Shown piece by piece: positions 1 to 37,795 of a DNA stretch of 64,000 nucleotides. This DNA is from Isurus oxyrinchus. Lineage: Eukaryota. Position numbers and translations under genes: made by a program. The stretch is taken from contig JANJGN010000021.1 in assembly GCA_026770705.1 (NCBI GenBank), forward strand, positions 93,868,001 to 93,932,000. The letters run 5' to 3'. The first letter of the stretch is position 1. Each line of letters opens with the position of its first letter. Below the pieces are notes generated by a model, which was not told the DNA's origin, did not search any database, and worked only from the letters and a program-made list of their open reading frames with translations.

Positions 1-3000
1 CCTCACTCACCAACTCTCAGTCCCCGCCTCAATCACCGACACTCAGTCCCCCCTCACTCACCAACTCTCAGTCCCCCCTCACTCACCGACTCAGTCCCCC
101 CCTCACTCACCGACTCTCAGTCCCCCCTCACTCACCGACTCAGTCCCCCCCTCACTCACCGACTCTCAGTCCTCTCCTCACTCACCGACTCTCAGTCCCC
201 CCCTCACTCACCGACACTCAGTCCCCCCTCACTCACTGATTCTCAGTCCCCCCCTCACTCACCGACATTCATTGCCCCCCTCACTCACCGACTCCCAGTC
301 CCCCCCCCCCCATTACTCACCGACTCTCGGTCCCCCCCTCACTCACACACTCTCGGTCCCACCCTCACTCACCAACTCCCGTTCCCCCCCTCACTCACCG
401 ACTCTCAGTCCCCCCCTCACTCACTGACCCTCAGTCCCCCCTTCACTCACCGACTCTCAGTCCCCTCTCACTCACCGACTCTCAGTCCGCCCCTCACTCA
501 CCGACTCCCAGTCCCCCCCTCACTCACTGACCCTCAATCCCCCCTTCACTCACCGACTCTCAGTGCCCCCTCACTCACCAACTCTCATTGCCCCCCTTCA
601 CTCATCGACTCTCAGTCCCCTCTCACTCAGCGACTCTCAGTCCCCCTCACTCACCGACTCTCAGTCCTCCCCTCACTCACCGACTCTCAGTCCTCCACTC
701 ACTCACCGACTCTCAGTCCCCCCCTCACTCACCGACACTCAGTCCCCCCTCACTCACTGACTCTCAGTCCCCCCCTCACTCACCGACTCCCAGTGCCCCC
801 CCCCTTACTCACCGACTCTCGGTCCCCGCCTCACTTACACACTCTCGGTCCCACCCTCACTCACCAACTCCCGTTCCCCCCCTCACTCACCGACTCTCAG
901 TCCCCCCCTCACTCACTGACCCTCAGTCCCCCCTTCACTCACCGACTCTCTGTCCCCTCTCACTCAGCGACTCTCAGTCCCCCCTCACTCACCGACTCTC
1001 AGTCCCCCAGCTCACTCACCGACTCTTCGTCCCCCCCTCACTCACCGACTCTCATTGCCCCCCTCACTCACCGACTCCCAGTTCCCCCATCACACACACA
1101 CTCTCGGTCCCACCCTCACTCACCGACTCCCAGTCCGCCCTCACTCACCGACTCCCAGTCCCCCCCTCACTCACTGACCCTCAATCCCCCCTTCACTCAC
1201 TGACTCTCAGTGCCCCCTCACTCACCGACTCTCATTGCCCCCCTTCACTCATCGACTCTCAGTCCCCTCTCACTCAGCGACTCTCAGTCTCCCCCTCACT
1301 CACCGACTCTCAGTCCCCCACCTCACTCACCGACTCCCAGTCCCCCCCTCACTCACCGACTCCCAGTCCCCCCCTCACTCACCGACTCCCAGTCCCCCTC
1401 TCACTCACTGACCCTCAGTCCCCCCTTCACTCACCGACTCTCAGTCTCTCCCTCACTCACCGTCCTTCAGTCCCCCCTCACTCACTACTCTCCGTCCCCC
1501 ACCTCACTCACCGACTCTCAGTCCCCACCTCACTCACCGTCTCTCCGTCCCCCCCTCACTCACCGACTCTCATTGCCCCCCTCACTCACCGACTCCCAGT
1601 TCCCCCCTCACTCACACACTCTCGGTCCCACCCTCACTCACCGACTCCCACTCCGCCCCTCACTCACCGAATCCCAGTCCCCCCCTCACTCACTGACCCT
1701 CAGTCCCCCCTTCACTCACCGACTCTCAGTTCCCCCCTCACACACCGACCTTCAGTTGACCCTCACTCATCAAGTCTCCGTCCCCCCGTCACTGACCAAC
1801 CCTCAGTCCCCCCCTCACTCACCGACTCTCAGTCCCCCCCTCACTCACCGACTCTCAATCCTCCCCTCACTCACCAACTCTCAGTCCCCGCCTCAATCAC
1901 CGACACTCAGTCCCCCCTCACTCACCAACTCTCAGTCCCCCCTCACTCACCGACTCAGTCCCCCCCTCACTCACCGACTCTCAGTCCCCCCTCACTCACC
2001 GACTCAGTCCCCCCCTCACTCACCGACTCTCAGTCCTCTCCTCACTCACCGACTCTCAGTCCCCCCCTCACTCACCGACACTCAGTCCCCCCTCACTCAC
2101 TGATTCTCAGTCCCCCCCCTCACTCACCGACATTCATTGCCCCCCTCACTCACCGACTCCCAGTCCCCCCCCCCCATTACTCACCGACTCTCGGTCCCCC
2201 CCTCACTCACACACTCTCGGTCCCACCCTCACTCACCAACTCCCGTTCCCCCCCCTCACTCACCGACTCTCAGTCCCCCCCTCACTCACTGACCCTCAGT
2301 CCCCCCTTCACTCACCGACTCTCAGTCCCCTCTCACTCACCGACTCTCAGTCCGCCCCTCACTCACCGACTCCCAGTCCCCCCCCTCACTCACTGACCCT
2401 CAATCCCCCCTTCACTCACCGACTCTCAGTGCCCCCTCACTCACCAACTCTCATTGCCCCCCTTCACTCATCGACTCTCAGTCCCCTCTCACTCAGCGAC
2501 TCTCAGTCCCCCTCACTCACCGACTCTCAGTCCTCCCCTCACTCACCGACTCTCAGTCCTCCCCTCACTCACCGACTCTCAGTCCCCCCCTCACTCACCG
2601 ACACTCAGTCCCCCCTCACTCACTGACTCTCAGTCCCCCCCCTCACTCACCGACTCCCAGTGCCCCCCCCCCTTACTCACCGACTCTCGGTCCCCGCCTC
2701 ACTTACACACTCTCGGTCCCACCCTCACTCACCAACTCCCGTTCCCCCCCTCACTCACCGACTCTCAGTCCCCCCCTCACTCACTGACCCTCAGTCCCCC
2801 CTTCACTCACCGACTCTCTGTCCCCTCTCACTCAGCGACTCTCAGTCCCCCCTCACTCACCGACTCTCAGTCCCCCAGCTCACTCACCGACTCTTCGTCC
2901 CCCCCCTCACTCACCGACTCTCATTGCCCCCCTCACTCACCGACTCCCAGTTCCCCCATCACACACACACTCTCGGTCCCACCCTCACTCACCGACTCCC

Positions 3001-6000
3001 AGTCCGCCCTCACTCACCGACTCCCAGTCCCCCCCTCACTCACTGACCCTCAATCCCCCCTTCACTCACTGACTCTCAGTGCCCCCTCACTCACCGACTC
3101 TCATTGCCCCCCTTCACTCATCGACTCTCAGTCCCCTCTCACTCAGCGACTCTCAGTCTCCCCCTCACTCACCGACTCTCAGTCCCCCACCTCACTCACC
3201 GACTCCCAGTACCCCCCTCACTCACCGACTCCCAGTCCCCCCCTCACTCACCGACTCCCAGTCCCCCTCTCACTCACTGACCCTCAGTCCCCCCTTCACT
3301 CACCGACTCTCAGTCTCTCCCTCACTCACCGTCCTTCAGTCCCCCCTCACTCATCAATTCTCCGTCCCCCCGTCACTGACCGACCCTCAGTGCCCCCATC
3401 ACTCACCGACTCTCAGTCCCCCCCCCACACACCGACTCTCAGACCCGCCTCATTCACCGTCTCTCAGCCCCCCCTCACTCACTGACTCTCAGTTCGCCCC
3501 CACGCACCGACTCTCAATCGCCCCCTCGCACACCGACCCTCAGCCCCCCTCTCACTCACCGACTCTCAGTCCCCCCCTCACTCACCGACTCTCAGTCCCC
3601 TGTCACTCACCGACTCTCATTGCCCCCCTCAGTCACCGACTCCCAGTCCCCCCCCCCCACCCACCGACTCTCGGTCCCCCCCCTCACTCACCCACTCTCA
3701 GTCCCCCCCTCACTCACTGACCCTTAGTCCACCCTCATTCACCGACTCTCAGTGCCCCCCTCGCTCACCGACTCTCAGTCCACGCCCCCTCACTCACTGA
3801 CCCTCAGTCCCCCCCTCACTCACCGACTCTCCGTCCCCTCCTCACGCACTGACCCTCAGTACCCCCTCATTCACCGACTCTCAGCCCCACCCACTCACTC
3901 ACCGACCCTCAGTGGTCCCCCCCCTCGCTCACCGACTCTCAGACGCCCCCCGTCGCTCACCGACTCTCAGTGCCCCCCTCACTCACCGACTCTCAGTCCC
4001 CCTCTCATTCACCGACTCTCAGTCCCCCTCTCATTCACCGACTCTCAGTCCCCCCTTCACTCACCGACTTTCTGTCCCCTCTCACTCAGCGACTCTCAGT
4101 CCCCCCCCCCACCCACCGACTCTCGGTCCCCCCCCTCACTCACCCACTCTCAGTCCCCCCCTCACTCACTGACCCTTAGTCCACCCTTATTCACCGACTC
4201 TCAGTGCCCCCCTCGCTCACCGACTCTCAGTCCACGCCCCCTCACTCACTGACCCTCAGTCCCCCCTCACTCACCGACTCTCCGTCCCCTCCTCACGCAC
4301 TGACCGTCAGTACCCCCTCATTCACCGACTCTCAGCCCCACCCACTCACTCACCGACCCTCAGTGGTCGCCCCCTCGCTCACCGACTCTCAGACGCCCCC
4401 CGTCGCTCACCGACTCTCAGTGCCCCCCTCACTCACCGACTCTCAGTCCCCCTCTCATTCACCGACTCTCAGTCCCCCCTCACTCACCGACTCTCAATCC
4501 TCCCCTCACTCACCGACTCTCAGTCCCCGCCTCAATCACCGACACTCAGTCCCCCCTCACTCACCGACTCTCAGTCCCCCCTCACTCACCGACTCTCAGT
4601 CCCCCCCCTCACTCACCGACTCTCAGTCCCCCCCTCACTCACCGACTCTCAGTCCCCCCCTCACTCACCGACTCTCAGTCCCCCCCTCACTCTCCGACTC
4701 TCAGTCTCCCACTCACTCACCGACTCTCAGTCCCCCCCCTCACTCACCGACTCTCAGTCCCCCCCTCACTCACCGACTCTCAGTCCTCCCCTCACTCACC
4801 GACTCTCAGACCCCCTCACTCACCGACTCAGTCCCCCCCTCACTCACCGACTCTCAGTCCCCCCCTCATTCACCGACACTCAGTCCCCCCTCACTCACTG
4901 ACTCTCAGTCCCCCCCTCACTCACCGAGATTCATTGCCCCCCTCACTCACCGACTCCCAGTCCCCCCCCTCACTCACCGACTCCCGTTCCCCCCCTCATT
5001 CACAGAATCTCATTTCCCCCCTCACTCAGCGACTCTCAGTCCCCCCTGACTCAGCGACTCTCAGTCCCCCCTGACTCACCGACTCTCAGTCCCCCCTCAC
5101 TCACCGACTCTCAGTCCCCCCCCCTCGCTCACCGACTCTCAGACGCCCCCCGTCGCTCACCGACTCTCAGTGCCCCCCTCACTCACCGACTCTCAGTCCC
5201 CCCCTCACTCACCGACTCTCAATCCTCCCCTCACTCACCGACTCTCAGTCCCCGCCTCAATCACTGACACTCAGACCCCCCTCACTCACCGACTCTCAGT
5301 CCCCCCCTCACTCACCGACTCTCAGTCCCCCCTCACTCACCGACACTCAGTCCCCCCCCTCACTCACCGACATTCATTGCCCCCCTCACTCACCGACACC
5401 CAGTCCCCCCCTTACTCACCGACATTCATTGCCCCCCTCACTCACCGACTCTCAGTCCCCCCCTCACTCACTGACCCTCAGTCCCCCCTTCACTCACCGA
5501 CTTTCTGTCCCCTCTCACTCAGCGACTCTCAGTCCCCCCCCCCACCCACCGACTCTCGGTCCCCCCCTCACTCACCCACTCTCAGTCCCCCCCCTCACTC
5601 ACTGACCCTTAGTCCACCCTTATTCACCGACTCTCAGTGCCCCCCTCGCTCACCGACTCTCAGTCCACGCCCCCTCACTCACTGACCCTCAGTCCCCCCT
5701 CACTCACCGACTCTCCGTCCCCTCCTCACGCACTGACCGTCAGTACCCCCCTCATTCACCGACTCTCAGCCCCACCCACTCACTCACCGACCCTCAGTGG
5801 TCGCCCCCTCGCTCACCGACTCTCAGACGCCCCCCGTCGCTCACCGACTCTCAGTGCCCCCCTCACTCACCGACTCTCAGTCCCCCTCTCATTCACCGAC
5901 TCTCAGTCCCCCCTCACTCACCGACTCTCAGTCCCCGCCTCAATCACCGACACTCAGTCCCCCTCACTCACCGACTCTCAGTCCCCCCTCACTCACCGAC

Positions 6001-9000
6001 TCTCAGTCCCCCCCTCACTCACCGACTCTCAGTCCCCCCCTCACTCACCGACTCTCAGTCCCCCCCTCACTCACCGACTCTCAGTCCCCCCCTCACTCTC
6101 CGACTCTCAGTCTCCCACTCACTCACCGACTCTCAGTCCCCCCCTCACTCACCGACTCTCAGTCCCCCCCTCACTCACCGACTCTCAGTCCTCCCCTCAC
6201 TCACCGACTCTCAGACCCCCTCACTCACCGACTCAGTCCCCCCCTCACTCACCGACTCTCAGTCCCCCCCCTCACTCACCGACACTCAGTCCCCCCTCAC
6301 TCACTGACTCTCAGTCCCCCCCCTCACTCACCGAGATTCATTGCCCCCCTCACTCACCGACTCCCAGTCCCCCCCCTCACTCACCGACTCCCGTTCCCCC
6401 CCTCATTCACAGAATCTCATTTCCCCCCTCACTCAGCGACTCTCAGTCCCCCCTGACTCAGCGACTCTCAGTCCCCCCTGACTCACCGACTCTCAGTCCC
6501 CCCTCACTCACCGACTCTCAGTCCCCCCCCCCTCGCTCACCGACTCTCAGACGCCCCCCGTCGCTCACCGACTCTCAGTGCCCCCCTCACTCACCGACTC
6601 TCAGTCCCCCCCTCACTCACCGACTCTCAATCCTCCCCTCACTCACCGACTCTCAGTCCCCGCCTCAATCACTGACACTCAGACCCCCCTCACTCACCGA
6701 CTCTCAGTCCCCCCTCACTCACCGACTCTCAGTCCCCCCCTCACTCACCGACTCTCAGTCCCCCCCTCACTCACCGACTCTCAGTCTCCCCCTCACTCAC
6801 CGACTCTCAGTCCCCCACTCACTCACCGACTCTCAGTCCCCCCCTCACTCACCGACTCTCAGTCCCCCACTCACTCACCGACTCTCAGTCCTCCCCTCAC
6901 TCACCGACTCTCAGACCCCCTCACTCACCGACTCAGTCCCCCCCTCACTCACCGACTCTCAGTCCCCCCCTCACTCACCGACACTCAGTCCCCCCTCACT
7001 CACTGACTCTCAGTCCCCCCCTCACTCACCGAGATTCATTGCCCCCCTCACTCACCGACTCCCAGTCCCCCCCTCACTCACCGACTCCCGTTCCCCCCCT
7101 CATTCACAGAATCTCATTTCCCCCCTCACTCAGCGACTCTCAGTCCCCCCTGACTCAGCGACTCTCAGTCCCCCCTGACTCACCGACTCTCAGTCCCCCC
7201 TCACTCACCGACTCTCAGTCCCCCCCCCTCGCTCACCGACTCTCAGACGCCCCCCGTCGCTCACCGACTCTCAGTGCCCCCCTCACTCACCGACTCTCAG
7301 TCCCCCCCTCACTCACCGACTCTCAATCCTCCCCTCACTCACCGACTCTCAGTCCCCGCCTCAATCACTGACACTCAGACCCCCCTCACTCACCGACTCT
7401 CAGTCCCCCCTCACTCACCGACTCTCAGTCCCCCCCTCACTCACCGACTCTCAGTCCCCCCCTCACTCACCGACTCTCAGTCTCCCCCTCACTCACCGAC
7501 TCTCAGTCCCCCCCTCACTCACCGACACTCAGTCCCCCCTCACTCACCGACACTCAGTCCCCCCCCTCACTCACCGACATTCATTGCCCCCCTCACTCAC
7601 CGACTCCCAGTCCCCCCCTTACTCACCGACTCTCGGTCCCCCCCTCACTCACCGACTCTCGGTCCCCCCCTCACTCACCGAATCTCAGTTCCACCACTCA
7701 CTCACCGACTCTCAGTCCACGCCCCCTCACTCACTGACCCTCAGTCCCCCCTCACTCACCGACTCTCCGTCCCCTCCTCACTCACTGACCCTCAGTACCC
7801 CTTCATTCACCGACTCTCAGCCCCACCCACTCACTCACCGACCCTCAGTCGCCCCCCCCTCGCTCACCGACTCTCAGACGCCCCCCGTCGCTCACCGACT
7901 CTCAGTGCCCCCCTCACTCACCGACTCTCAGTCCCCCCCTCACTCACCGACTCTCAATCCTCCCCTCACTCACCGACTCTCAGTCCCCGCCTCAATCACT
8001 GACACTCAGTCCCCCCTCACTCACCGACTCTCAGTCCCCCCTCACTCTCCGACTCTCAGTCTCCCCCTCACTCACCAACTCTCAGTCTCCCCCTCACTCA
8101 CCGACTCTCGGTCCCCCCCCTCACTCACCGACTCTCAGTCCTCCCCTCACTCACCGACTCTCAGTCCCCCCCTCACTCACCGACACTCAGTCCCCCCTCA
8201 CTCACCGACACTCAGTCCCCCCCTCACTCACCGACATTCATTGCCCCCCTCACTCACCAACTCCCAGTCCCCCCCCTTACTCACCGACTCTCGGTCCCCC
8301 CCTCACTCACCGACTCTCGGTCCCCCCCCTCACTCACCGAATCTCAGTTCCACCACTCACTCTCCGACTCTCAGTCCTACCCTCACTCACCGACTCTCAG
8401 TCCACGCCCCCTCACTCACTGACCCTCAGTCCCCCCTCACTCACCGACTCTCCGTCCCCTCCTCACTCACTGACCCTCAGTACCCCTTCATTCACCGACT
8501 CTCAGCCCCCCCACTCACTCATCGACCCTCAGTCTCCCCCCCGCACTCACCGACACTCAGTCCCCCTCTCACTCACCGACTCTCAGTCCCCGCCAAAGTC
8601 ACCGACACTCAGTCCCCCCCCCCACGCACCGACTCTCAGTCCCCCCTCACTCACCAACTCTCAGTCCCCCCTCACTCACCAACTCTCAGTCCCCCCTCAC
8701 TCACCGACTCTCAGTCCCCCCCTCACTCACCAACCCTCAGTCCCCCCTCACTCACCGACTCTCAGTCCCCCCCCCCCCTTACTCACCGACTCTCCATCCC
8801 CCCCTCACTCACACACTCTCGGTCCCACCCTCACTCACCAACTCCCGTTCCCCCCCTCACTCACAGAATCTCAGTTCCCCCCTCACTCACCGTCCCTCAT
8901 TCCCCCCCTCACTCACTGTCCCTCAGTCCCCCCCTTCACTCACCGACTCTCCCTCCCCCCACACTCACCGACTCTCAGACCTCCTCTCACTCACTGACTC

Positions 9001-12000
9001 TCAATCCCCCCCTCACTCACTGACTCCCAGTCCCCCCCCTCACTCACTGACTCCCAGTCCCCCCCCCTCACTCACCGACTCTCAGTCCTCCTCTCACTCA
9101 CTGACTCTCAATCCCCCCCCTCACTCACTGACTCCCAGTCCCCCCCCTCACTCACCGACTCTCAGTCCTCCTCTCACTCACCGACTCTCAGTCCTCCTCT
9201 CACTCACCGACTCTCAGTCCCCCCCCTCACTCACCGACCTTCAGTTGACCCTCACTCATCAAGTCTCCGTCCCCCCGTCACTGACCGACCCTCAGTGCCC
9301 CCATCACTCACCGACTCTCAGTCCCCCCCCCACGCACCGACCCTCAGTCGCCCCTCACTCACCGACTCTCAGTCACCCCCTTGCACACCGACCATCAGCC
9401 CCCCTCTCACTCACCGACTCTCAGTCCCCCCCTCACTCACTGGCTCTCAGTCGCCCCCTCACTCACCGACTCTCAGTCCCCCCCTCACTCACCGACCCTC
9501 ATTGCCCCCCTCAGTCACTGACTTCCAGTCCCCCCCTCACTCACTGACTCTCGGTCCCCCCCTCACTCACCGAATCTCAGTCCACGCCCCCTCACTCACT
9601 GACCCTCAGTCCCCCCTCACTCACCGACTCTCCGTCCCCTCCTCACTCACTGACCCTCAGTACCCCCCTCATTCACCGACTCTCAGCCCCCCCCCCACTC
9701 ACTCATCGACCCTCAGTCGCCCCACGTCGCTCACCGACTCTCAGTCCCCCCATCATTCGCCGACTCTCAGTCCTCCCCTCACTCACCGACTCTCAGTCCC
9801 CGCCTCAATCACCAACACTCAGTCCCCGCCTCAATCACCAACACTCAGTCCCCGCCTCAGTCACCGACACTCAGTCCCCCCTCACTCACCAACTCTCAGT
9901 CCCCCCTCACTCACCGACTCTCAGTCTCCCCCTCACTCACCGACTCTCAGTCCCCCCCTCACTCACCGACACTCAGTCCCCCCTCACTCACTGTCTCTCA
10001 GTCCCCCCCTCACTCACTGACATTCATTGCCCCCCTCACTCACCGACTCCCAGTACCCCCCCCCCTTACTCACCGACTCTCGGTCCCCCCCTCACTCACA
10101 CACTCTCGGTCCCACCCTTACTTACCAACTCACGTTCCCCCTCTCACTCACTGACTCTCGGTCCCCCCCTCACTCACCGAATCTCAGTTCCACCACTCAC
10201 TCTCCGACTCTCAGTCCTACCCTCACTCACCGACTCTCAGTCCACGCCCCCTCACTCACTGACCCTCAGTCCCCCCCTCACTCACCGACTCTCCGTCCCC
10301 TCCTCACTCACTGACCCTCAGTACCCCCTCATTCACCGACTCTCAGTCCCCCCCACTCACTCACCGACTCTCAGTCCGCCCCCGCACTCACCGACTCTCA
10401 GTCCCCCCTCACACACTGTCTCTCAGTCCCCCCCCTCACTCACCGACATTCATTGCCTCCCTCACTCACCGACTCCCAGTCCCCCCCCCCCACCTTACTC
10501 ACCGACTCTCGGTCCCCCCCTCACTCACACACTCTCAGTCCCACCCTCACTCACCAACTCCCGTTCCCCCCCTCACTCACAGAATCTCAGTTCGCCCCCT
10601 CACTCACCGACTCCCAGTCCCCCCCTCACTCACTGACCCTCAATCCCCCCTTCACTCATCGACTCTCAGTGCCCCCCTCACTCACCGACTCTCAGTCCCC
10701 CCCTCATTCGCCGACTCTCAGTCCCCCCCCTCACTCACCGTCCCTCATTCCCTCCCTCACTAACCGACCTTCAGTCCCCCCTCACTCACCGACTCTCCCT
10801 CCCCCCAGACTCACTGACTCTCAGACCTCCTCTCACTCACCAACTCTCAATCCCCCCCTCACTCACTGACTCCCAGTCCTCCCTCCTCACTCACCGACTC
10901 TCAGTCCTCCTCTCACTCACCGACTCTCAATCCCCCCCTCACTCACCGACTCTCAGTCCCCCCCTCACTCACCGACTCTCTGTCCCCCCCTCACTCACCG
11001 ACTCTCAGTCACCCCCTCACTCACCGACTCTCAGTCACCCCCTTACTCACCGACTCTCATTGCCCCCCTCACTCACCGACTCCCAGTCCCCCCCCCCCGC
11101 CTCACTCACCGACTCTCGCTCCCCACCTCGCTCACACACTCTCGGTCCCACCCTCACTCACCAACTCTCATTCCCCCCCTCACTCACTGACCCTCAGTCC
11201 CCCCTTCACTCACCGACTCTCAGTCCCCCCCCTCACTCACCGACCTTCAGTTGACCCTCACTCATCAAGTCTCCGTCCCCCCGTCACTGACCGACCCTCA
11301 GTCCCCCCTTCACTCACTGACCCTCAGTCCCCCATTCACTCACCGACTCTCAGTCCCCCCCCTCTCTCACCGAATCTCAGTTCCCCCCCCTCACTCACCA
11401 ACTCTCAGTCCCCCCCTCACTCACTGACCCTCAGTCCCCCCTTCACTCACTGACCCTCAGTCCCCCCTTCACTCACCGACTCTCAGTCCCCCCCTCGCTC
11501 ACCGACCTTCAGTTGACCCTCACTCATCAAGTCTCCGTCCCCCCGTCACTGACCGACCCTCAGTGCCCCCATCACTCCGCGACTCTCAGTCCCCCAATCG
11601 CACACCGACCCTCAGCCCCCCTCTCACTCACCGACTCTCAGTCCCCCCTTCACTCACTGGCTCTCAGTCCCCCCCTCACTCACCGACTCTCAGTCCCCCC
11701 CTCACTCACCGACTCTCAGTCCCCCCCTCACTCACCGACTCTCAGTTCCACCACTCACTCTCCGACTCTCAGTCCTACCCTCACTCACCGACTCTCAGTC
11801 CCCCCCTCACTCACTGAATCTCAGTTCCACCACTCACTCTCCGACTCTCAGTCCTACCCTCACTCACCGACTCTCAGTCCCCCCCTCACTCACTGAATCT
11901 CAGTTCCACCACTCACTCACCAACTCTCAGTCCCCCCCTCACTCACTGACCCTCAGTCCCCCCTTCACTCACTGACCCTCAGTCCCCCCTTCACTCACCG

Positions 12001-15000
12001 ACTCTCAGTCCCCCCCTCGCTCACCGACCTTCAGTTGACCCTCACTCATCAAGTCTCCGTCCCCCCGTCACTGACCGACCCTCAGTGCCCCCATCACTCC
12101 GCGACTCTCAGTCCCCCCCTCGCACACCGACCCTCAGCCCCCCTCTCACTCACCGACTCTCAGTCCCCCCTTCACTCACTGGCTCTCAGTCCCCCCCTCA
12201 CTCACCGACTCTCAGTCCCCCCCTCACTCACCGACTCTCAGTCCCCCCCTCACTCACCGACTCTCAGTTCCACCACTCACTCTCCGACTCTCAGTCCTAC
12301 CCTCCCTCACCGACTCTCAGTCCCCCCCTCACTCACTGAATCTCAGTTCCACCACTCACTCTCCGACTCTCAGTCCTACCCTCACTCACCGACTCTCAGT
12401 CCCCCCCTCACTCACCGACTCTCAGTCCCCCCCTCACTCTCCGACTCTCAGTCTCCCACTCACTCACCGACTCTCAGTCCCCCCCCTCACTCACCGACTC
12501 TCAGTCCCCCACTCACTCACCGACTCTCAGTCCTCCCCTCACTCACCGACTCTCAGACCCCCTCACTCACCGACTCAGTCCCTCCCTCACTCACCGACTC
12601 TCAGTCCCCCCCTCACTCACCGACACTCAGTCCCCCCTCACTCACTGACTCTCAGTCCCCCCCTCACTCACCGAGATTCATTGCCCCCCTCACTCACCGA
12701 CTCCCAGTCCCCCCCCTCACTCACCGACTCCCGTTCCCCCCCTCATTCACAGAATCTCATTTCCCCCCTCACTCAGCGACTCTCAGTCCCCCCTGACTCA
12801 CCGACTCTCAGTCCCCCCCTCACTCACCGACTCTCAGTCCCCCCCCCCTCGCTCACCGACTCTCAGACGCCCCCCGTCGCTCACCGACTCTCAGTGCCCC
12901 CCTCACTCACCGACTCTCAGTCCCCCCCTCACTCACCGACTCTCAATCCTCCCCTCACTCACCGACTCTCAGTCCCCGCCTCAATCACTGACACTCAGAC
13001 CCCTCTCACTCACCGACTCTCAGTCCCCCCTCACTCACCGACTCTCAGTCCCCCCCTCACTCACCGACTCTCAGTCCCCCCCTCACTCACCGACTCTCAG
13101 TCTCCCCCTCACTCACCGACTCTCAGTCCCCCCCTCACTCACCGACTCTCAGTCCTCCCCTCACTCACCGACTCTCAGTCCCCCCCTCACTCACCGACAC
13201 TCAGTCCCCCCTCACTCACCGACACTCAGTCCCCCCCTCACTCACCGACATTCATTGCCCCCCTCACTCACCGACTCCCAGTCCCCCCCTTACTCACCGA
13301 CTCTCGGTCCCCCCCTCACTCACCGAGATTCATTGCCCCCCTCACTCACCGACTCCCAGTCCCCCCCTCACTCACCGACTCCCGTTCCCCCCCTCATTCA
13401 CAGAATCTCATTTCCCCCCTCACTCAGCGACTCTCAGTCCCCCCTGACTCACCGACTCTCAGTCCCCCCTCACTCACCGACTCTCAGTCCCCCCCCCTCG
13501 CTCACCGACTCTCAGACGCCCCCCGTCGCTCACCGACTCTCAGTGCCCCCCTCACTCAGCGACTCTCAGTCCCCCCTGACTCACCGACTCTCAGTCCCCC
13601 CTCACTCACCGACTCTCAGTCCCCCCCCCCTCGCTCACCGACTCTCAGACGCCCCCCGTCGCTCACCGACTCTCAGTGCCCCCCCTCACTCACCGACTCT
13701 CAGTCCCCCCCTCACTCACCGACTCTCAATCCTCCCCTCACTCACCGACTCTCAGTCCCCGCCTCAATCACTGACACTCAGACCCCTCTCACTCACCGAC
13801 TCTCAGTCCCCCCTCACTCACCGACTCTCAGTCCCCCCCTCACTCACCGACTCTCAGTCCCCCCCTCACTCACCGACTCTCAGTCCCCCCCTCACTCACC
13901 GACTCTCAGTCTCCCCCTCACTCACCGACTCTCAGTCCCCCCCTCACTCACCGACTCTCAGTCCTCCCCTCACTCACCGACTCTCAGTCCCCCCCTCACT
14001 CACCGACACTCAGTCCCCCCTCACTCACCGACACTCAGTCCGCCCCTCACTCACCGACATTCATTGCCCCCCTCACTCACCGACTCCCAGTCCCCCCCTT
14101 ACTCACCGACTCTCGGTCCCCCCCTCACTCACCGACTCTCGGTCCCCCCCTCACTCACCGAATCTCAGTTCCACCACTCACTCTCCGACTCTCAGTCCTA
14201 CCCTCACTCACCGACTCTCAGTCCACGCCCCCTCACTCACTGACCCTCAGTCCCCCCTCACTCACCGACTCTCCGTCCCCTCCTCACTCACTGACCCTCA
14301 GTACCCCTTCATTCACCGACTCTCAGCCCCACCCACTCACTCACCGACCCTCAGTCGCCCCCCCCCTCGCTCACCGACTCTCAGACGCCCCCCGTCGCTC
14401 ACCGACTCTCAGACGCCCCCCTCACTCACCGACTCTCAGTCCCCCCCTCACTCACCGACTCTCAATCCTCCCCTCACTCACCGACTCTCAGTCCCCGCCT
14501 CAATCACTGACACTCAGTCCCCCCTCACTCACCGACTCTCAGTCCCCCCTCACTCTCCGACTCTCAGTCTCCCCCTCACTCACCAACTCTCAGTCTCCCC
14601 CTCACTCACCGACTCTCAGTCCCCCCCTCACTCACCGACTCTCAGTCCTCCCCTCACTCACCGACTCTCAGTCCCCCCCTCACTCACCGACACTCAGTCC
14701 CCCCTCACTCACCGACACTCAGTCCCCCCCTCACTCACCGACATTCATTGCCCCCCTCACTCACCAACTCCCAGTCCCCCCCCTTACTCACCGACTCTCG
14801 GTCCCCCCCTCACTCACCGACTCTCGGTCCCCCCCTCACTCACCGAATCTCAGTTCCACCACTCACTCTCCGACTCTCAGTCCTACCCTCACTCACCGAC
14901 TCTCAGTCCACGCCCCCTCACTCACTGACCCTCAGTCCCCCCCTCACTCACCGACTCTCCGTCCCCTCCTCACTCACTGACCCTCAGTACCCCTTCATTC

Positions 15001-18000
15001 ACCGACTCTCAGCCCCCCCACTCACTCATCGACCCTCAGTCTCCCCCCGCACTCACCGACACTCAGTCCCCCTCTCACTCACCGACTCTCAGTCCCCGCC
15101 AAAGTCACCGACACTCAGTCCCCCCCCCACGCACCGACTCTCAGTCCCCCCTCACTCACCAACTCTCAGTCCCCCCTCACTCACCAACTCTCAGTCCCCC
15201 CTCACTCACCGACTCTCAGTCCCCCCCTCACTCACCAACCCTCAGTCCCCCCTCACTCACCGACTCTCAGTCCCCCCCCCCCCTTACTCACCGACTCTCC
15301 ATCCCCCCCTCACTCACACACTCTCGGTCCCACCCTCACTCACCAACTCCCGTTCCCCCCCTCACTCACAGAATCTCAGTTCCCCCCTCACTCACCGACT
15401 CTCATTCCCCCCCTCACTCACTGACCCTCAGTCCCCCCTTCACTCACCGACTCTCAGTCCCCCCCTCATTCGCCGACTCTCAGTCCCTCCCACACTCACC
15501 GTCCCTCATTCCCTCCCTCACTAACCGACCTTCAGTCCCCCCTCACTCACCGACTCTCCCTCCCCCCACACTCACCGACTCTCAGACCTCCTCTCACTCA
15601 CTGACTCTCAATCCCCCCCTCACTCACTGACTCCCAGTCCCCCCCCCCTCACTCACCGACTCTCAGTCCTCCTCTCACTCACTGACTCTCAATCCCCCCC
15701 TCACTCACTGACTCCCAGTCCCCCCCCTCACTCACCGACTCTCAGTCCTCCTCTCACTCACCGACTCTCAGTCCCCCCCTCACTCACCGACCTTCAGTTG
15801 ACCCTCACTCATCAAGTCTCCGTCCCCCCCGTCACTGACCGACCCTCAGTGCCCCCATCACTCACCGACTCTCAGTCCCCCCCCCACGCACCGACCCTCA
15901 GTCGCCCCTCACTCACCGACTCTCAGTCACCCCCTTGCACACCGACCATCAGCCCCCCTCTCACTCACCGACTCTCAGTCCCCCCCTCACTCACTGGCTC
16001 TCAGTCGCCCCCTCACTCACCGACTCTCAGTCCCCCCCTCACTCACCGACCCTCATTGCCCCCCTCAGTCACTGACTTCCAGTCCCCCCCTCACTCACTG
16101 ACTCTCGGTCCCCCCCTCACTCACCGAATCTCAGTCCACGCCCCCTCACTCACTGACCCTCAGTCCCCCCTCACTCACCGACTCTCCGTCCCCTCCTCAC
16201 TCACTGACCCTCAGTACCCCCCTCATTCACCGACTCTCAGCCCCCCCCCACTCACTCATCGACCCTCAGTCGCCCCACGTCGCTCACCGACTCTCAGTCC
16301 CCCCATCATTCGCCGACTCTCAGTCCTCCCCTCACTCACCGACTCTCAGTCCCCGCCTCAATCACCAACACTCAGTCCCCGCCTCAGTCACCGACACTCA
16401 GTCCCCCCTCACTCACCAACTCTCAGTCCGCCCTCACTCACCGACTCTCAGTCTCCCCCTCACTCACCGACTCTCAGTCCCCCCCTCACTCACTGACATT
16501 CATTGCCCCCCTCACTCACCGACTCCCAGTACCCCCCCCTTACTCACCGACTCTCGGTCCCCCCCCTCACTCACACACTCTCGGTCCCACCCTTACTTAC
16601 CAACTCACGTTCCCCCTCTCACTCACTGACTCTCGGTCCCCCCCCTCACTCACCGAATCTCAGTTCCACCACTCACTCTCCGACTCTCAGTCCTACCCTC
16701 ACTCACCGACTCTCAGTCCACGCCCCCTCACTCACTGACCCTCAATCCCCCCTCACTCACCGACTCTCCGTCCCCTCCTCACTCACTGACCCTCAGTACC
16801 CCCCTCATTCACCGACTCTCAGTCCCCCCCACTCACTCACCGACTCTCAGTCCGCCCCCGCACTCACCGACTCTCAGTCCCCCCTCACACACTGTCTCTC
16901 AGTCCCCCCCTCACTCACCGACATTCATTGCCCCCCTCACTCACCGACTCCCAGTCCCCCCCCCCCACCTTACTCACCGACTCTCGGTCCCCCCCTCACT
17001 CACACACTCTCGGTCCCACCCTCACTCACCAACTCCCGTTCCCCCCCTCACTCACAGAATCTCAGTTCGCCCCCTCACTCACCGACTCCCAGTCCCCCCC
17101 TCACTCACTGACCCTCAATCCCCCCTTCACTCATCGACTCTCAGTGCCCCCCTCACTCACCGACTCTCAGTCCCCCCCTCATTCGCCGACTCTCAGTCCC
17201 CCCCCTCACTCACCGTCCCTCATTCCCTCCCTCACTAACCGACCTTCAGTCCCCCCTCACTCACCGACTCTCCCTCCCCCCAGACTCACTGACTCTCAGA
17301 CCTCCTCTCACTCACCAACTCTCAATCCCCCCCTCACTCACTGACTCCCAGTCCCCCCTCCTCACTCACCGACTCTCAGTCCTCCTCTCACTCACCGACT
17401 CTCAATCCCCCCCTCACTCACCGACTCTCAGTCCCCCCCTCACTCACCGACTCTCTGTCCCCCCCTCACTCACCGACTCTCAGTCACCCCCTCACTCACC
17501 GACTCTCAGTCACCCCCTCACTCACCGACTCTCATTGCCCCCCTCACTCACCGACTCCCAGTCCCCCCCCCCCGCCTCACTCACCGACTCTCGCTCCCCA
17601 CCTCGCTCACACACTCTCGGTCCCACCCTCACTCACCAACTCTCATTCCCCCCTCACTCACTGACCCTCAGGCCCCCCTTCACTCACCGACTCTCAGTCC
17701 CCCCCTCACTCACCGACCTTCAGTTGACCCTCACTCATCAAGTCTCCGTCCCCCCGTCACTGACCGACCCTCAGTCCCCCCTTCACTCACTGACCCTCAG
17801 TCCCCCATTCACTCACCGACTCTCAGTCCCCCTCCCCACCTCGCTCACACACTCTCGGTCCCACCCTCACTCACCAACTCTCATTCCCCCCTCACTCACT
17901 GACCCTCAGGCCCCCCTTCACTCACCGACTCTCTGTCCCCCCCTCACTCACCGACTCTCAGTCACCCCCTCACTCACTGAATCTCAGTTCCACCACTCAC

Positions 18001-21000
18001 TCACCGACTCTCAGTCCACGCCCCTTCACACTGACCCTCAGTCCCCCCTCACTCACCGACTCTCCGTCCCCTCCTCACTCACTGACCCTCAGTACCCCCT
18101 CATTCACCGACTCTCAGCCCCCCCCACTCACTCATCGACCCTCAGTCGCCCCCCGTCGCTCACCGACTCTCAGTCCGCCCCCGCACTCACCGACCCTCAG
18201 TCCCCCCCCTCACTCACCGACTCTCATTGCCCCCCTTCACTCATCAACTCTCAGTCCCCTCTCACTCAGCGACTCTCAGTCCCCCCTCACTCACCGACTC
18301 TCAGTCCCCCACCTCACTCACCGACTCCCAGTCCCCCCCTCACTCACTGACTCCCAGTCCCCCCCTCACTCACCGACTCCCAGTCCCCCCCTCACTCACT
18401 GACCCTCAGTCCCCCCTTCACTCACCGACTCTCAGTGCCCCCCTCATTAACCGACGCTCAATCCCCCCGTCACTCACCGACTCTCAGTCCCCCCTCACAC
18501 ACCGACTCTCAGTCTCTCCCTCACTCACCGTCCTTCAGTCCCCCCTCACTCATCAATTCTCCGTCCCCCCGTCACTGACCGACCCTCAGTGCCCCCATCA
18601 CTCACCGACTCTCAGTCCCCCCCCACGCACCGACTCTCAGTCCCGCCTCATTCACCGTCTCTCTGCCCCCCCTCACTCACCGACTCTCAGTTCCCCCCCA
18701 CGCACCGACTCTCAATCGCCCCCTCGCACACCGACCCTCAGCCCCCCTCTCACTCACCGACTCTCAGTCCCCCCCTCACTCACCCACTCTCAGTCCCCCC
18801 CTCACTCACTGACCCTTAGTCCACCCTCATTCACCGACTCTCAGTCCCCCCCTCGCTCACCGACTCTCCGTCCCCTCCTCACGCACTGACATTCATTGCC
18901 CCCCTCACTCACCGACTCCTAGTACCCCCCCCCCTTACTCACCGACTCTCGGTCCCCCCCTCACTCACACACTCTCGGTCCCACCCTTACTCACCAACTC
19001 CCGTTCCCCCTCTCACTCACTGACTCTCGGTCCCCCCCTCACTCACCGAATCTCAGTTCCACCACTCACTCTCCGACTCTCAGTCCTACCCTCACTCACC
19101 GACTCTCAGTCCACGCCCCCTCACTCACTGACCCTCAGTCCCCCCTCACTCACCGACTCTCTGTCCCCTCCTCACTCACTGACCCTCAGTACCCCCTCAT
19201 TCACCGACTCTCAGTCCCCCCCACTCACTCACCGACTCTCAGTCCGCCCCCGCACTCACCGACTCTCAGTCCCCCCATCATTCGCCGACTCTCAGTCCTC
19301 CCCTCACTCACCAACTCTCAGTCCCCGCTTCAGTCACCGACACTCAGTCCCCCCCCACGCACCGACTCTCAGTCCCCCCTCACTCACCGACTCTCAGTCC
19401 CCCCTCACTCACCGACTCTCAGTCCTCCCCTCACTCACCGACTCTCAGTCCCCCCCTCACTCACCAACCCTCAGTCCCCCCTCACACACTGTCTCTCAGT
19501 CCCCCCCTCACTCACCGACATTCATTGCCCCCCTCACTCACCGACTCCCAGTCCCCCCCCCCCCCTTACTCACCGACTCTCGGTCCCCCCCTCACTCACA
19601 CACTCTCAGTCCCACCCTCACTCACCAACTCCCGTTCCCCCCCTCACTCACAGAATCTCAGTTCGCCCCCTCACTCACCGACTCTCATTCCCCCCCTCAC
19701 TCACTGACCCTCAATCCCCCCTTCACTCATCGACTCTCAGTGCCCCCCTCACTCACCGACTCTCAGTCCCCCCCTCATTCGCCGACTCTCAGTCCCTCCC
19801 TCACTCACCGTCCCTCATTCCCTCCCTCACTAACCGACCTTCAGTCCCCCCTCACTCACCGACTCTCAGTCCCCCCTCACTCACCGACTCTCAGTCACCC
19901 CCTCACTCACCGACTCTCTGTCCCCCCCTCACTCACCAACTCTCAGTCACCCCCTCACTCACCGACTCTCAGTCACCCCCTTACTCACCGACTCTCATTG
20001 CCCCCCTCACTCACCGACTCCCAGTACCCCCCCCCGCCTCACTCACCGACTCTCGGTCCCCCCCCTCGCTCACACACTCTCGGTCCCACCCTCACTCACC
20101 AACTCTCATTCCCCCCCTCACTCACTGACTCTCAGTCCCCCCCTCACTCACCGACATTCATTGCCCCCCTCACTCACCGACTCCCAGTCCCCCCCCCCCC
20201 TTACTCACCGACTCTCGGTCCCCCCCCCTCACTCACACACTCTCAGTCCCACCCTCACTCACCAACTCCCGTTCCCCCCCTCACTCACAGAATCTCAGTT
20301 CGCCCCCTCACTCACCGACTCTCATTCCCCCCCTCACTCACTGACCCTCAATCCCCCCCTCACTCACCCACTCTCAGTTCCCCCTCACTCACTGACCCTT
20401 AGTCCACCCTCATTCACCGACTCTCAGTCCCCCCCTCGCTCACCAACTCTCAGTCCACGCCCCCTCACTCACTGACCCTCAGTCCCCCCTCACTCACCGA
20501 CTCTCCGTCCCCTCCTCACTCACTGACTCTCAGACCTCCTCTCACTCACCAACTCTCAATCCCCCCCTCACTCACTGACTCCCAGTCCCCCCCTCACTCA
20601 CCGACTCTCAGTCCTCCTCTCACTCACCGACTCTCAATCCCCCCCTCACTCACCGACTCTCAGTCCCCCCCTCACTCACCGACTCTCAGTCCCCCCCTCA
20701 CTCACCGACTCTCTGTCCCCCCCTCACTCACCGACTCTCTGTCCCCCCCTCACTCACCGACTCTCAATCCCCCCCTCACTCACTGACTCTCAGTCCCCCC
20801 CTCACTCACCGACTCTCAGTCCCCCCTCACTCACCGACTCTCAGTCACCCCCTCACTCACCGACTCTCTGTCCCCCCCTCACTCACCAACTCTCAGTCAC
20901 CCCCTCACTCACCGACTCTCAGTCACCCCCTTACTCACCGACTCTCATTGCCCCCCTCACTCACCGACTCCCAGTACCCCCCCCCGCCTCACTCACCGAC

Positions 21001-23148
21001 TCTCGGTCCCCCCCTCGCTCACACACTCTCAGTCCCCCCCTCACTCACCGACCTTCAGTTGACCCTCACTCATCAAGTCTCCGTCCCCCCGTCACTGACC
21101 GACCCTCAGTGCCCCCATCACTCCGCGACTCTCAGTCCCCCCCACGCACCGACCCTCAGTCGCCCCTCACTCACCGACTCTCAGTCCCCCCCTCGCACAC
21201 CGACCCTCAGCCCCCCTCTCACTCACCGACTCTCAGTCCCCCCTTCACTCACTGGCTCTCAGTCCCCCCCTCACTCACCGACTCTCAGTCCCCCCCTCAC
21301 TCACCGACTCTCAGTCCCCCCCTCACTCACTGAATCTCAGTTCCACCACTCACTCTCCGACTCTCAGTCCTACCCTCACTCACCGACTCTCAGTCCCCCC
21401 CTCACTCACTGAATCTCAGTTCCACCACTCACTCTCCGACTCTCAGTCCTACCCTCACTCACCGACTCTCAGTCCCCCCCTCACTCACTGAATCTCAGTT
21501 CCACCACTCACTCACCGACTCTCAGTCCACGCCCCTTCACACTGACCCTCAGTCCCCCCTCACTCACCGACTCTCCGTCCCCTCCTCACTCACTGACCCT
21601 CAGTACCCCCTCATTCACCGACTCTCAGCCCCCCCCACTCACTCATCGACCCTCAGTCGCCCCACGTCGCTCACCGACTCTCAGTCCGCCCCCGCACTCA
21701 CCGACCCTCAGTCCCCCCCCTCACTCACCGACTCTCAGTCCCCCCATCATTCGCCGACTCTCAGTCCTCCCCTCACTCACCGACTCTCAGTCCCCGCCTC
21801 ACTCACCGACTCTCAGTCCCCGCCTCACTCACCGACTCTCAGTCCCCCCTCACTCACCGACTCTCAGTCTCCCCCTCACTCACCGACTCTCAGTCCTCCC
21901 CTCACTCACCGACTCTCAGTCCCCCCTCACTCACTGTCTCTCAGTCCCCCCCTCACTCACCGACATTCATTGCCCCCCTCACTCACCGACTCCCAGTCCC
22001 CCCCCCCCTTACTCACCGACTCTCGGTCCCCCCCTCACTCACACACTCTTGGTCCCACCCTCACTCACCAACTCCCGTTCCCCCCCTCACTCACAGAATC
22101 TCAGTTCGCCCCCTCACTCACCGACTCTCAGTCCCCCCTTCACTCACCGACTCTCAGTCCCCCCCTCATTCGCCGACTCTCAGTCCCTCCCTCACTCACC
22201 GTCCCTCATTTCCTCCCTCACTAACCAACCTTCAGTCCCCCCTCACTCACCGACTCTCCCTCCCCCCACACTCACCGACTCTCAGACCTCCTCTCACTCA
22301 CCAACTCTCAATCCCCCCCTCACTCACCGACTGTCAGTCCCCCCCTCACACACCAACTCTCTGTCCTCCTCTCACTCACAGACTCTCGGTCCCCCCCTCG
22401 CTCACACACTCTCGGTCCCACCCTCACTCACCGAATCTCAGTTCCCCCCCCTCACTCACCAACTCTCAGTCCCCCCCTCACTCACTGACCCTCAGTCCCC
22501 CCTTCACTCACCGACTCTCAGTCCCCCCCTCACTTACCGACGCTCAGACCCACCTCACCCACTGACTCTTAGACCCCCTCACTCACCGACTCTCGGTCCC
22601 CACCTCACTCACCCACACTCAGTACCCTCCCTCACTCACCGACTCTCAGTCCCACCCTCACTCACTGACCCTGAGTCCCCCCTCATTCACCCACTGACTC
22701 TTAGACCCCCTCACTCACCGACTCTCAGTCCCCCCCTCACTTACCGACTCGCAGTTAACTCCTCATTCACCGACTCTCAGTCCTCCCCACTCACTCACCG
22801 ACCCTCAGTCGCTTCCCCCTCGCTCACCGACTCTCAGTCGCCCCCCGTCGCTCACCGACTCTCAGTCCCCCCTCTCACTCACTGACTCTCAGTCCCCCCC
22901 TCACTCACTGACTCTCAGTCCCCCCCTCACTCACTGACTCTCAGTCCCCCCCCTCAGTCACCAACTCTCAGTCCCCCCTCACTCACTGACTCTCAGTCCC
23001 CCCCCCTCACTCACCGACTCTCAGTCCCCCCTCACTCACTGACTCTCAGTCCCCCCCCTCACTCACCAACTCTCAGTCCCCCCCTCACTCCCCGACTCTC
23101 AGTTCCCCCATCACTCACTGACTCTCAATTCCCTCCCACCGCACTCAC
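1..23148. repeat. Giant tandem array of a ~25-bp unit (plus: CTCACTCACCGACTCTCAGTCCCCCC; minus: GGGGGGACTGAGAGTCGGTGAGTGAG), ~900 copies, filling the intron after the MHC class I alpha-2 exon; runs off the left edge
   Basis: Unit visible continuously from base 1 to ~23150. C-run length varies, variant units recur, and strand composition is extremely C-rich/G-rich. Confidence 0.98.
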
Positions 23149-23421
23149 CAACTCACAGCACCTTCGGGCTCTATTCAAGATATGCCTTCAGCCTGTCAAT
23201 GCACTCCCCCTCTAGGTAAAACTACCGCTGCTGATTTTTCCAATCTCTGATGTGCTGCCCCCATCTGGTGCTCTCTCTCCATGGCACTGGTGTGAACAAC
23301 ACCAGCTGATCTTTGTCAAATGTCATGTCATCTTGCCCGTCCACTCCGAACTGTGAGACTCCATTCGTGGTGCTATCATCCCTCAGGTCACAGCTGGCTA
23401 TCAGCTGGAAGGAGTGGATCC
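23149..23421 (-). pseudogene. MHC class I alpha-2 exon (273 bp) with three in-frame stops
   Basis: Acceptor gattgacag|GG ATC; donor GTT G|gtgagt. Translation: GIHSFQLIASCDLRDDSTTNGVSQFGVDGQDDMTFDKDQLVLFTPVPWRESTRWGQHIRDWKNQQR*FYLEGECIDRLKAYLE*SPKVL*V. Both alpha-2 cysteines are kept. Stops at 23222-24, 23171-73 and 23153-55. Confidence 0.95.
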
Positions 23422-23538
23422 CTGTCAATCAAATGCACGCAACCAATCTGATCCAGTCGACTGAGAAACACCACCCATTATCCCACACCACCTCTTCAAA
23501 TATCACATTGGTAGCCAACGGTGTTAAAGGACTCCTGG

Positions 23539-23932
23539 GGGCATCCAGTGTGGAGGGGGGCCGAGAGGGAGGAGGACCTCCTCGTGAACCTGCTCCTGGC
23601 CAAGTTGGCCATTAACAGGTCGAGGCAGTGGGCGATCGAGGGTGTCGTCTGACCCGACTGTCTGCCCCTCTTCTGCAACTACATTCCCAGCCAGGTGTCC
23701 CTGGAGAGGGAACATGTGGTGTCTGCCAACACCGCCGAGGCCTTCCATGCCCAGTGGGCACCGCCAGGGCTGGGGTGCTTTATCAACTCCCTTAATCACA
23801 TTTTGATTTAAGGTTTGCAAGTTTCCTTTAAAGTTTGTCTTTGGTTTTGTAATTCCCTAATTTAGGGGCAGTCTTTGTTTTGTCCCTGATTTTGTTAATT
23901 TAGTTTATTTGGTTGACTCCGAAAAAAAAAGA
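23539..23932 (+). mobile_element. 5'-truncated Tx1/L1-group LINE 3' end in MHC intron 2
   Basis: Degenerate ORF2 C-terminus (..AKLAINRSRQ..DCLPLF..), T-rich 3' UTR and A-tail. 16-bp TSD: GTTAAAGGACTCCTGG (23523-38) / GTTAAATGACTCCTGG (23933-48). Confidence 0.8.
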
Positions 23933-24046
23933 GTTAAATGACTCCTGGATGTCAGCCTGTATATTTCAAAGGCCCCTTCAAACAAATTTGCATATTTAAT
24001 GGATCCAAGAACCCAATGTATACTTAAAGAACCGTCCGAACATCTA

Positions 24047-24402
24047 ATTCTTTCACGGGATGTGGACATCACTGGCAAGGCCAGCATTTGTTGCCCATCC
24101 CTAATTGCCCTTGAGCTGAGTGGTTTGCTAGGCCATGTCAGAGGGCAGTTAAGAGTCAGCCACATTGCTGTAGGTCTGGAGTCACGTGTAGGCCAGACTG
24201 GGTAAGGACATTAGTGAACCAGATGGGATTTTACAACAATCGATGATAGTTGTCTTGGTCACCACTACCGAAACTAGCTTTCAATTACAGATTTATTAAT
24301 TGAATTTAAATTCTACCAGCTGCTGTGGTGGGACTTGAACCCATGTCCCCAGAGCATTAGCCTGGGCCTGTGGATTGTTCGTCCAGCAACATTACCATCT
24401 CC
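24047..24402 (-). mobile_element. tRNA-derived SINE (SacSINE1/DeuSINE-like)
   Basis: B-box-like GGGTTCAAGTCCC on minus. Body shared with copies at 40507 and 51745. 3' tail (CAAGGGCAATTAGGGATGGGCAACAAATGCTGGCC) matches the local LINE tail. Confidence 0.8.
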
Positions 24403-24419
24403 GCAGTCAGTAGCATTGA

Positions 24420-24720
24420 GCCATTTAGGGCACTGAAGGAGAACTTTCGGCCCATCGAGTCCATGCTGGCTCTCTGTACTGCAACCCACCACCCCCCCAT
24501 TTCCTCCGCCATATCCCCTATGTCCTGCACGTTTATTTCTCTGAAGCGCCCATCCAGTTTTCTCTTGAGATTGTTGATCATCGCTGCTTCCAGCAGCCCA
24601 GTAGGCAGCGAATCCCAGGTCACGGGCTGCATGAAACAAACTTCTTCCTCACTTCTCTTGCTCAGAACCTTAAATCTGTGTCCTTGTCCTTGTACCATCA
24701 GCTAATATGAAGAGTTTCCC
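24420..24720 (-). mobile_element. CR1 LINE 3' fragment
   Basis: Degenerate CR1 ORF2 C-terminus (..GHRFKV..WDSLP..KRKLD..) plus 3' UTR. Confidence 0.7.
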
Positions 24721-24879
24721 TTGGTATTTAAAGGTCTGATATACAGTTGCTCCCCACAGCCTCCACCCCCCTGTCCTAGGAGATGAAGACACTTTCGCCC
24801 ATAATCCTGGATCTCAGATCCTATTCCCCTTCCGGCCTCTCTCAAAAGAGGACGAAAGATGGGGTGTGCGAGGACTCAG

Positions 24880-25143
24880 AATTTGACTAATTGGTCTGGG
24901 ACATGAGCTTCTGAACATGGAATTTGAAATGTTTCTCCTTCTCCCGTGCGAGCATCTTCTTCCTCTCCCAAAACACGGGCTCCTCGCTCTCCACCATCCA
25001 CTGTTCCTGAGGGACCAACTCCTTCCGATCGCTGTCGTACACAAAAAAAAACTGGACACCGTCCACATAACCAACAATCACAAACTCCGAGAGACCAGAG
25101 ACCAGTGTCATAACAGTGGCCAAATAACAGAGAGAATGGGAGC
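24880..25143 (-). pseudogene. MHC class I alpha-1 exon (264 bp) with a premature stop and a mutated donor
   Basis: Acceptor ctctctgtgttgcag|GC TCC CAT. Translation: GSHSLCYLATVMTLVSGLSEFVIVGYVDGVQFFFVYDSDRKELVPQEQWMVESEEPVFWERKKMLAREKEKHFKFHVQKLMSQTN*SN. TAG at 24887-89 falls where the N-Q-S sequon is expected. CTGAGT (24879-74) is at the expected GTGAGT position. Confidence 0.95.
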
Positions 25144-37504: not shown

Positions 37505-37795
37505 GCACCAGTACCCAGACTGGCATTATCCCTCTCACACACAATTACTCACTGACCAAGGAATAAGGTCCCATACTCAGCCTGGGACTGCCCCTCTCAA
37601 ACCCCACTGGCTCAGGGTTATTTCCCCAGTACCCAGACTGGCATTGCCCCTCTCAGACACCATTACTCACTGACACAGGGTTAGTTCTCCAGTACCCAGC
37701 CTGTCATTTCCCCTCTCAGACCCCATTACTCACTGACCCAGGGTTAATTCCCCAGTACCCAGACTGGCATTGACCTGCTCTGACCCCATCATACA
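37505..37795. repeat. ~63-bp minisatellite (~4.5 copies) abutting the leader-exon donor
   Basis: CCAGTACCCAGACTGGCATT..CCATTACTCACTGAC units at ~37508, 37571, 37626, 37689 and 37752. Confidence 0.85.

Follow-up and report, generated by a model that had tools for sequence, protein, structure and literature searches.

Minisatellites whose first monomer spans an exon-intron boundary are known in the human genes F7, IFI 6-16, CBS, LMNB2 and PDGF, where they have 5-26 copies of the unit (PMC1557585). In F7, a 37-bp unit in intervening sequence (IVS) 7 is repeated 5-9 times, and only the first 5' splice site (the one lying most upstream) serves as donor; intron 2 of IFI 6-16 has 25 pseudo-sites, and splicing makes use of the two proximal ones. 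The other arrays comprise 15-20 repeats in CBS IVS13, 10-15 copies of a 100-bp unit in LMNB2, and 16-18 copies of an 81-bp unit in intron 4 of PDGF (PMC1557585). Here we describe an array that appears to be of the same kind, in a stretch of 64,000 nucleotides from the shark Isurus oxyrinchus (contig JANJGN010000021.1, positions 93,868,001 to 93,932,000; we refer to this whole stretch as the window). It begins at the end of the alpha-2 exon of an MHC (major histocompatibility complex) class I gene copy and fills the first 23 kb of the window. We consider it probable that a very large minisatellite in an intron has here reached the size of a satellite, that it arose by tandem duplication of a 26-bp segment across the boundary between the alpha-2 exon and intron 3, and that the array is most likely functionless. 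An initial annotation of the window had treated the array as a new phenomenon, which the precedents in several human genes contradict (PMC1557585).

As in the human arrays of the F7, IFI 6-16 and CBS type, the shark unit joins the last bases of the exon to the start of the intron, the units are arranged head-to-tail, the authentic donor is reiterated in register, and use of a downstream donor leads to an in-frame stop. Unlike those arrays, the shark array has ~884 units over more than 23 kb (30 to 100 times more units), it shows satellite-like higher-order segmental duplications, and its host is a pseudogene copy. Judged by its sequence, the array looks like a boundary-spanning minisatellite that is extreme in scale.

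The host gene has close relatives as well. UBA genes form a multicopy MHC-Ib cluster (PMC10751288), and the gene in the window shares with shark genes of this type its exon phases and the ...ELRV/V boundary (the slash marks the end of the exon); furthermore, both its alpha-1 and its alpha-2 sequences group with their clade. Unlike functional UBA-type genes, this copy has stops in both exons and has lost its alpha-1 donor. Arrays in intron 3 are not mentioned in the description of the cluster (PMC10751288), in which the terms "intron", "satellite" and "tandem repeat" occur 0 times.

Anatomy of the array

Positions 1-23148 of the window form, on the minus strand, a single tandem array of a 26-bp unit without recognisable interruption, and the array extends past base 1 of the window. 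Tandem Repeats Finder (TRF) reports it at 1..23127 with a period of 26, 883.7 copies, 82% matches, 4% indels and a score of 29300, and degenerate units in the same register prolong it from 23127 to 23148. We also scanned for an 18-nt core of the unit: with up to 3 mismatches, there were 834 matches, as compared to 0.41 expected from shuffled sequences. TRF and the unit scan thus bear out the initial annotation's array of over 23 kb. A scan of the rest of the window (23160-64000, ~41 kb) found no copy of the unit.

Read on the sense strand (the minus strand, which is also that of the neighbouring gene), the unit has the consensus ACTGAGAGTCG/GTGAGTGAG and then a G-run; the bases before the donor read A CTG AGA GTC G. 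The runs of G that the initial annotation had reported are present, and their length should be corrected from 5-8 to mostly 4-8, with a mode of 6-7. Similarly, it had put the number of GTGAGT donors at ~900, and we counted 698 exact matches on the sense strand, or ~79% of units (703 if GTAAGT is included), and 0 on the plus strand. In 519 of these 698 cases, the base at -1 is G. Directly before GTGAGT, 457 units have TCG, 107 have TCA, and 47 have TTG. The last of these gives the TTG/GTGAGT form that is identical to the exon-array junction; this variant had been described as common, and it does exist, but it makes up just 7% of the units that contain GTGAGT. No site of the unit varies more than its CpG (25% TpG or CpA), and the junction-identical form is what CpG-to-TpG decay makes of the dominant TCG unit.

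G makes up 55% of the sense strand of the array, A 20%, T 17% and C 9%, and the GC skew is ~0.73. A scan of this strand turned up neither acceptor-like sites nor pyrimidine runs of 5 or more, so the description of it as offering donors only was accurate. In every unit, TGA is present in each of the three frames, and no frame of the sense strand stays open for more than 36 codons. Because of these stops, reading through the junction or using a downstream donor would lead to a stop at once, as had been proposed.

The array has a complex internal structure. Identical words recur most often at distances of 26, 52 and 79 bp, with further peaks at ~522, 685-696, 1,864-1,869 and 6,475-6,554 bp, and the larger distances include internal segmental duplications of 0.7, 1.9 and 6.5 kb. 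For example, the tile 1-1000 is 99.3% identical to 1865-2868 (an offset of 1.86 kb), tiles within 8001-11000 match copies 6.5 kb away at 94-99%, and the tile 6001-7000 has a copy at a distance of 0.7 kb that matches it at 96.6%. Divergence is greatest in the kilobase nearest the exon, whose best partner matches at only 85%. These patterns suggest that the array grew by slippage and unequal exchange, that segments of it are still being re-duplicated, and that its edges are poorly homogenised, which is the usual picture for such arrays.

Several other properties of the array can be noted. The observed/expected ratio for CpG is 0.80-0.93 along the array (0.87 overall; positions 1-21000), as compared to 0.27 in the rest of the window (23160-63700), and the criteria in common use would class all 23 kb of the array as a CpG island. 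We rejected a reading as a CpG island or hypomethylated region because the unit's CpG is its most decayed site; for the same reason, we take the high ratio as a sign of recent amplification rather than of protection. Stops are nearly absent from the plus (antisense) strand of the array, where frames stay open for up to 759 codons, and this strand has 577 acceptor-like sites (a pyrimidine tract and YAG). We view both as by-products of the composition of the unit. 

Canonical G-quadruplex motifs (with loops of up to 7 nt) were considered and set aside, as there are only 11 of them in 23 kb. There are 132 pairs of neighbouring runs of 7 or more G, which could form long-loop quadruplexes only, and this is speculative. 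Each unit also holds a small inverted repeat, ACTGA-GAG-TCRGT, which overlaps positions -3 to +2 of the donor (seen at 22850-22980 on the minus strand). When the RNA of five units was folded, all that formed was a weak hairpin of 5 bp (ACUGA-GAG-UCRGU); the z-score was -2.7 and the centroid was unpaired, and we did not accept it as a structure. An exact-pattern scan of metagenome contigs from the Joint Genome Institute (JGI) gave 0 matches to the unit, as expected, and is uninformative.

We also compared the array to immunoglobulin (Ig) switch regions, strictly as a work-alike. Like them, it is a kilobase-scale tandem repeat downstream of a donor, with a G-rich non-template strand and very strong GC skew. 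Unlike them, it lies in the context of a class I gene and is depleted in AID hotspots: AGCT occurs at 0.09 per kb (2 in 23 kb) versus 4.9 per kb outside the array, and WRCY and RGYW together occur at 12 versus 66 per kb, a 5-fold depletion. We rejected a switch-like reading on these grounds.

The exon-intron junction and the origin of the unit

On the minus strand, the junction reads GAGTTG (23154-23149) and then GTGAGT (23148-23143). The exon ends in ...CTG TGA GTT G and the intron begins with GTGAGTGCGG..., so that the array starts at the first intron base after the alpha-2 exon, as the initial annotation had it. The GTGAGT at 23143..23148 (minus strand) is both the authentic alpha-2 5' splice site and the first donor of the array: it lies in phase 1, as is the rule for class I exons, and at the boundary of the family (...ELRV/V). 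A weak-match scan showed that the last 11 nt of the alpha-2 exon (GCTGTGAGTTG; 23149..23159, minus strand) are homologous to the 5' part of the unit (ACTGAGAGTCG). Across the 26 nt that straddle the junction, 21 of 26 positions match the consensus unit, which equals the mean identity between units; therefore, the first monomer spans the exon-intron boundary.

What the unit would encode is also informative. The 10-mer that most often precedes GTGAGT is CTGAGAGTCG (243 of 698 units), and in the phase of the exon, the unit's first 10 bases encode Leu-Arg-Val plus the G of the split codon. A random 9-mer would encode L-R-V with a chance of ~5x10^-4. The alpha-2 end GQRELRV/V is common to proteins from Heterodontus (O19480), Ginglymostoma (O19479), Carcharodon, Cetorhinus, Hemiscyllium, Mustelus and both Scyliorhinus species. 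Two changes separate the exon end in the window from the consensus unit: an A>T change that creates the TGA, and a CpG>TpG change. All eight codons of the end of the exon in the window, which reads (stop)SPKVL(stop)V, are single-base changes from YGQRELRV. The consensus of the array is thus more faithful to the ancestral exon end than is the decayed exon itself.

Seeding of the array from the exon-intron junction, which the initial annotation had put forward, is well supported by these comparisons: the first unit straddles the boundary and the unit encodes the L-R-V of the clade in the frame of the exon. We infer the direction, with the exon as the source and the array as the copy, because L-R-V is conserved across shark orders. 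The duplicated segment would have comprised ~11 nt of exon (A CTG AGA GTC G, or the clade's Leu-Arg-Val codons and the G of the split codon) and ~15 nt of intron (GTGAGTGAG and the G-run), and its source was probably a shark's UBA-type nonclassical MHC class I gene. The array would then have been enlarged by replication slippage and unequal exchange; the blocks of 0.7, 1.9 and 6.5 kb would have been re-duplicated recently, with the exon-proximal edge remaining the least homogenised. The consensus-like 5' splice site, the downstream G-run and the three-frame stops of each unit would be by-products of the copied segment.

The host class I gene copy and the rest of the window

The alpha-2 exon lies at 23149..23421 on the minus strand (273 nt, with a CAG acceptor and a phase-1 end), and its translation aligns with the alpha-2 domains of shark class I proteins. 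It contains three in-frame stops: TAG at 23224-23222, TAG at 23173-23171, and TGA at 23155-23153. The alpha-1 exon, at 24880..25143 on the same strand, was identified from its reading frame and from a profile search against class I proteins (E=2.5e-24). It is open for 84 codons (25141-24890) and then has an in-frame TAG (24889-24887), and its donor is destroyed, with T/CTGAGT at 24880-24874 instead of G/GTGAGT. (The two exons were searched separately rather than as a joined model, and alpha-2 was handled in pieces between its stops.) A functional member of the family has an intact frame and intact splice sites, and this copy has neither; in this haplotype, it is a pseudogene. The initial annotation had suggested that use of downstream donors would give a product with only alpha-1 and alpha-2. 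With three stops in alpha-2, a stop in alpha-1, and no alpha-1 donor, the suggestion is moot here.

The closest protein by BLAST is the middle unit of a fused gene model from Mustelus asterias (XP_078075253), with 70% identity for alpha-1 and 66% for alpha-2. A separate search for homologous proteins of limited length, made with the 84 residues of alpha-1, gave no candidates. A maximum-likelihood tree of alpha-1 sequences groups the window with Heterodontus O19480 and Ginglymostoma O19479 at 100/100 support, and this clade is set apart from the classical UAA-type clade (Triakis and the nurse shark sequence 6LUP). Nested within it is a 100/96 sub-clade of the window, the middle unit of Mustelus XP_078075253 and two orectolobiform sequences. 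We take O19480 and O19479 to be the founding UBA sequences (Bartl et al. 1997). On the evidence of this tree, the gene appears to belong to the UBA-type nonclassical MHC class I clade.

Contigs from several public sequencing runs, which we label X1 to X15, differ from the window at two of the lesions. At position 23224, contigs from X5, X7 and X15 have AAG (Lys), and the window and X1 have the first TAG. At 24879-24880, contigs from X5 and X7 have GGTGAGT, as compared to the destroyed alpha-1 donor TCTGAGT of the window. For the other two alpha-2 stops, there is no contig difference among the differences listed. The lesions of the pseudogene are polymorphic, or else they differ in a near-identical paralog.

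Runs X5-X14 are very small (10-79 million letters, 2024) and come from two organisms, and their depth is in the hundreds to thousands over the pseudogene and the edge of the array. Such depth suggests targeted sequencing of this class I region. Intron 2 contains an element that resembles a short interspersed element (SINE; ~24034-24440), with contig depth ~10^5 times single copy in both whole-genome runs.

TRF also identified tandem repeats elsewhere in the window. A 34-bp repeat at 49379-49956 (17 copies, 94% matches) is unrelated to the 26-bp unit. There are short G-rich repeats at 43313-43638 (19/130 bp) and at 37605-37789 (63 bp), each with one weak match to the core of the array (4/18 mismatches), which we take as chance. 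A run of N occupies 63763-63891.

Competing explanations and the significance of the array

Instead of growing from the junction, an unrelated G-rich satellite could have landed in the intron or spread into it, and its likeness to the junction could be a coincidence or could reflect the overwriting of the last 11 nt of the exon by conversion. G-rich minisatellites are common, the exon end and the array could have been co-homogenised, and a single locus cannot prove the direction of copying. We nevertheless think this improbable. Read in the correct phase, the exon-like part of the unit gives L-R-V, with which alpha-2 ended ancestrally in several orders of sharks and which is rarely met by chance, and the window has no copy of the unit outside the array. 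Furthermore, its summed depth is only hundreds of times single copy: over the exon-proximal 250 nt of the array, a rough estimate of copy number from contig depth, which counts only copies that are at least 90% alike, gave ~130-700 times single copy for X1 and ~27-85 times for X15, as compared to ~2x10^5 times for the SINE in intron 2. These figures fit a family that is restricted to a single array or a few of them and that differs between samples in copy number or in variants. An error of assembly, in the length of the array or in its attachment to the exon, is quite unlikely as well. Long tandem arrays are error-prone, this one runs off the window, and its length is that given by the assembly. 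However, the array is rich in internal variants and does not consist of identical, collapsed units, and contigs from four runs, four studies and two organisms bridge position 23149: X1 (23099-23577), X15 (23031-23581), X5 (23074-23464) and X7 (22973-23443), with 50-176 nt on the side of the array and ~300-430 nt on the side of the exon. The junction is therefore not a mis-join, a danger to which the initial annotation had pointed.

It has also to be asked whether the array could be a functional RNA element, such as a sponge for the U1 small nuclear ribonucleoprotein (snRNP) or for hnRNP F/H, a chromatin-retention element, or an enforcer of truncated alpha1-alpha2 products; the initial annotation had suggested a U1/hnRNP-H decoy. 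U1 binds GTGAGT-type sites and G-runs bind hnRNP F/H, and each of the 698 GTGAGT sites is followed by a G-run from about +10, on a sense strand that is G-rich and strongly skewed. If the array were transcribed, U1 is predicted to be able to pair with each unit through 7 contiguous base pairs, from -1 to +6, with a wobble at +3, and the G-rich non-template strand would be predicted to favour R-loops. However, none of the sequencing runs found to contain the locus is an RNA run, the host is a pseudogene whose alpha-1 donor is destroyed, and the features that suggest function follow automatically from the copying of a junction. The units drift at 18% divergence with decay of the CpG, as expected without constraint, and pseudo-sites are mostly silent in the human precedents (PMC1557585). 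By analogy with F7, the first donor would be the one used if the array were transcribed. We regard a functional element as very improbable. We take the array to be functionless in this pseudogene because the donor, the G-run and the stops were inherited from the copied junction and because the units drift.

Some points do weigh against a functionless intronic array that was copied from the junction. That the array lies in an intron is something we infer: "intron 3" is an assumption, as the far end of the array and any alpha-3 exon are beyond the window. Its most likely lack of function is an argument from absence. The nearest relatives of the gene end alpha-2 in LGV (the Mustelus middle unit) or in LST or LSV (Stegostoma and Hemiscyllium) rather than in LRV; the variant CTGGGAGTCG, which encodes LGV, is a minority form of the unit (42 of 698). 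The ancestral junction was reconstructed from the proteins of relatives and not from their codons, and the roughness of the depth-based copy number counts on this side too.

The array shows how a satellite-sized array can arise from a 26-bp exon-intron junction, and it gives a repeat whose origin is datable. It is by far the largest junction-spanning minisatellite that we found in the reported literature. Such arrays inflate the introns of shark MHC class I genes, and the stop-free frames and acceptor-like sites on their opposite strand can mislead gene prediction.

The array may also be present in paralogs of this class I cluster that are intact and expressed, although we think this rather doubtful. 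If they do, they would provide a strong natural test of how the spliceosome chooses one donor among hundreds of identical ones. An intron of 20-30 kb with ~10^3 consecutive consensus donors would then be spliced from the first of them, which would be an extreme natural test of 5'-to-3' scanning for donors. Such an intron could also give a strongly GC-skewed, R-loop-prone, U1-binding RNA, with a putative effect on expression of the cluster.

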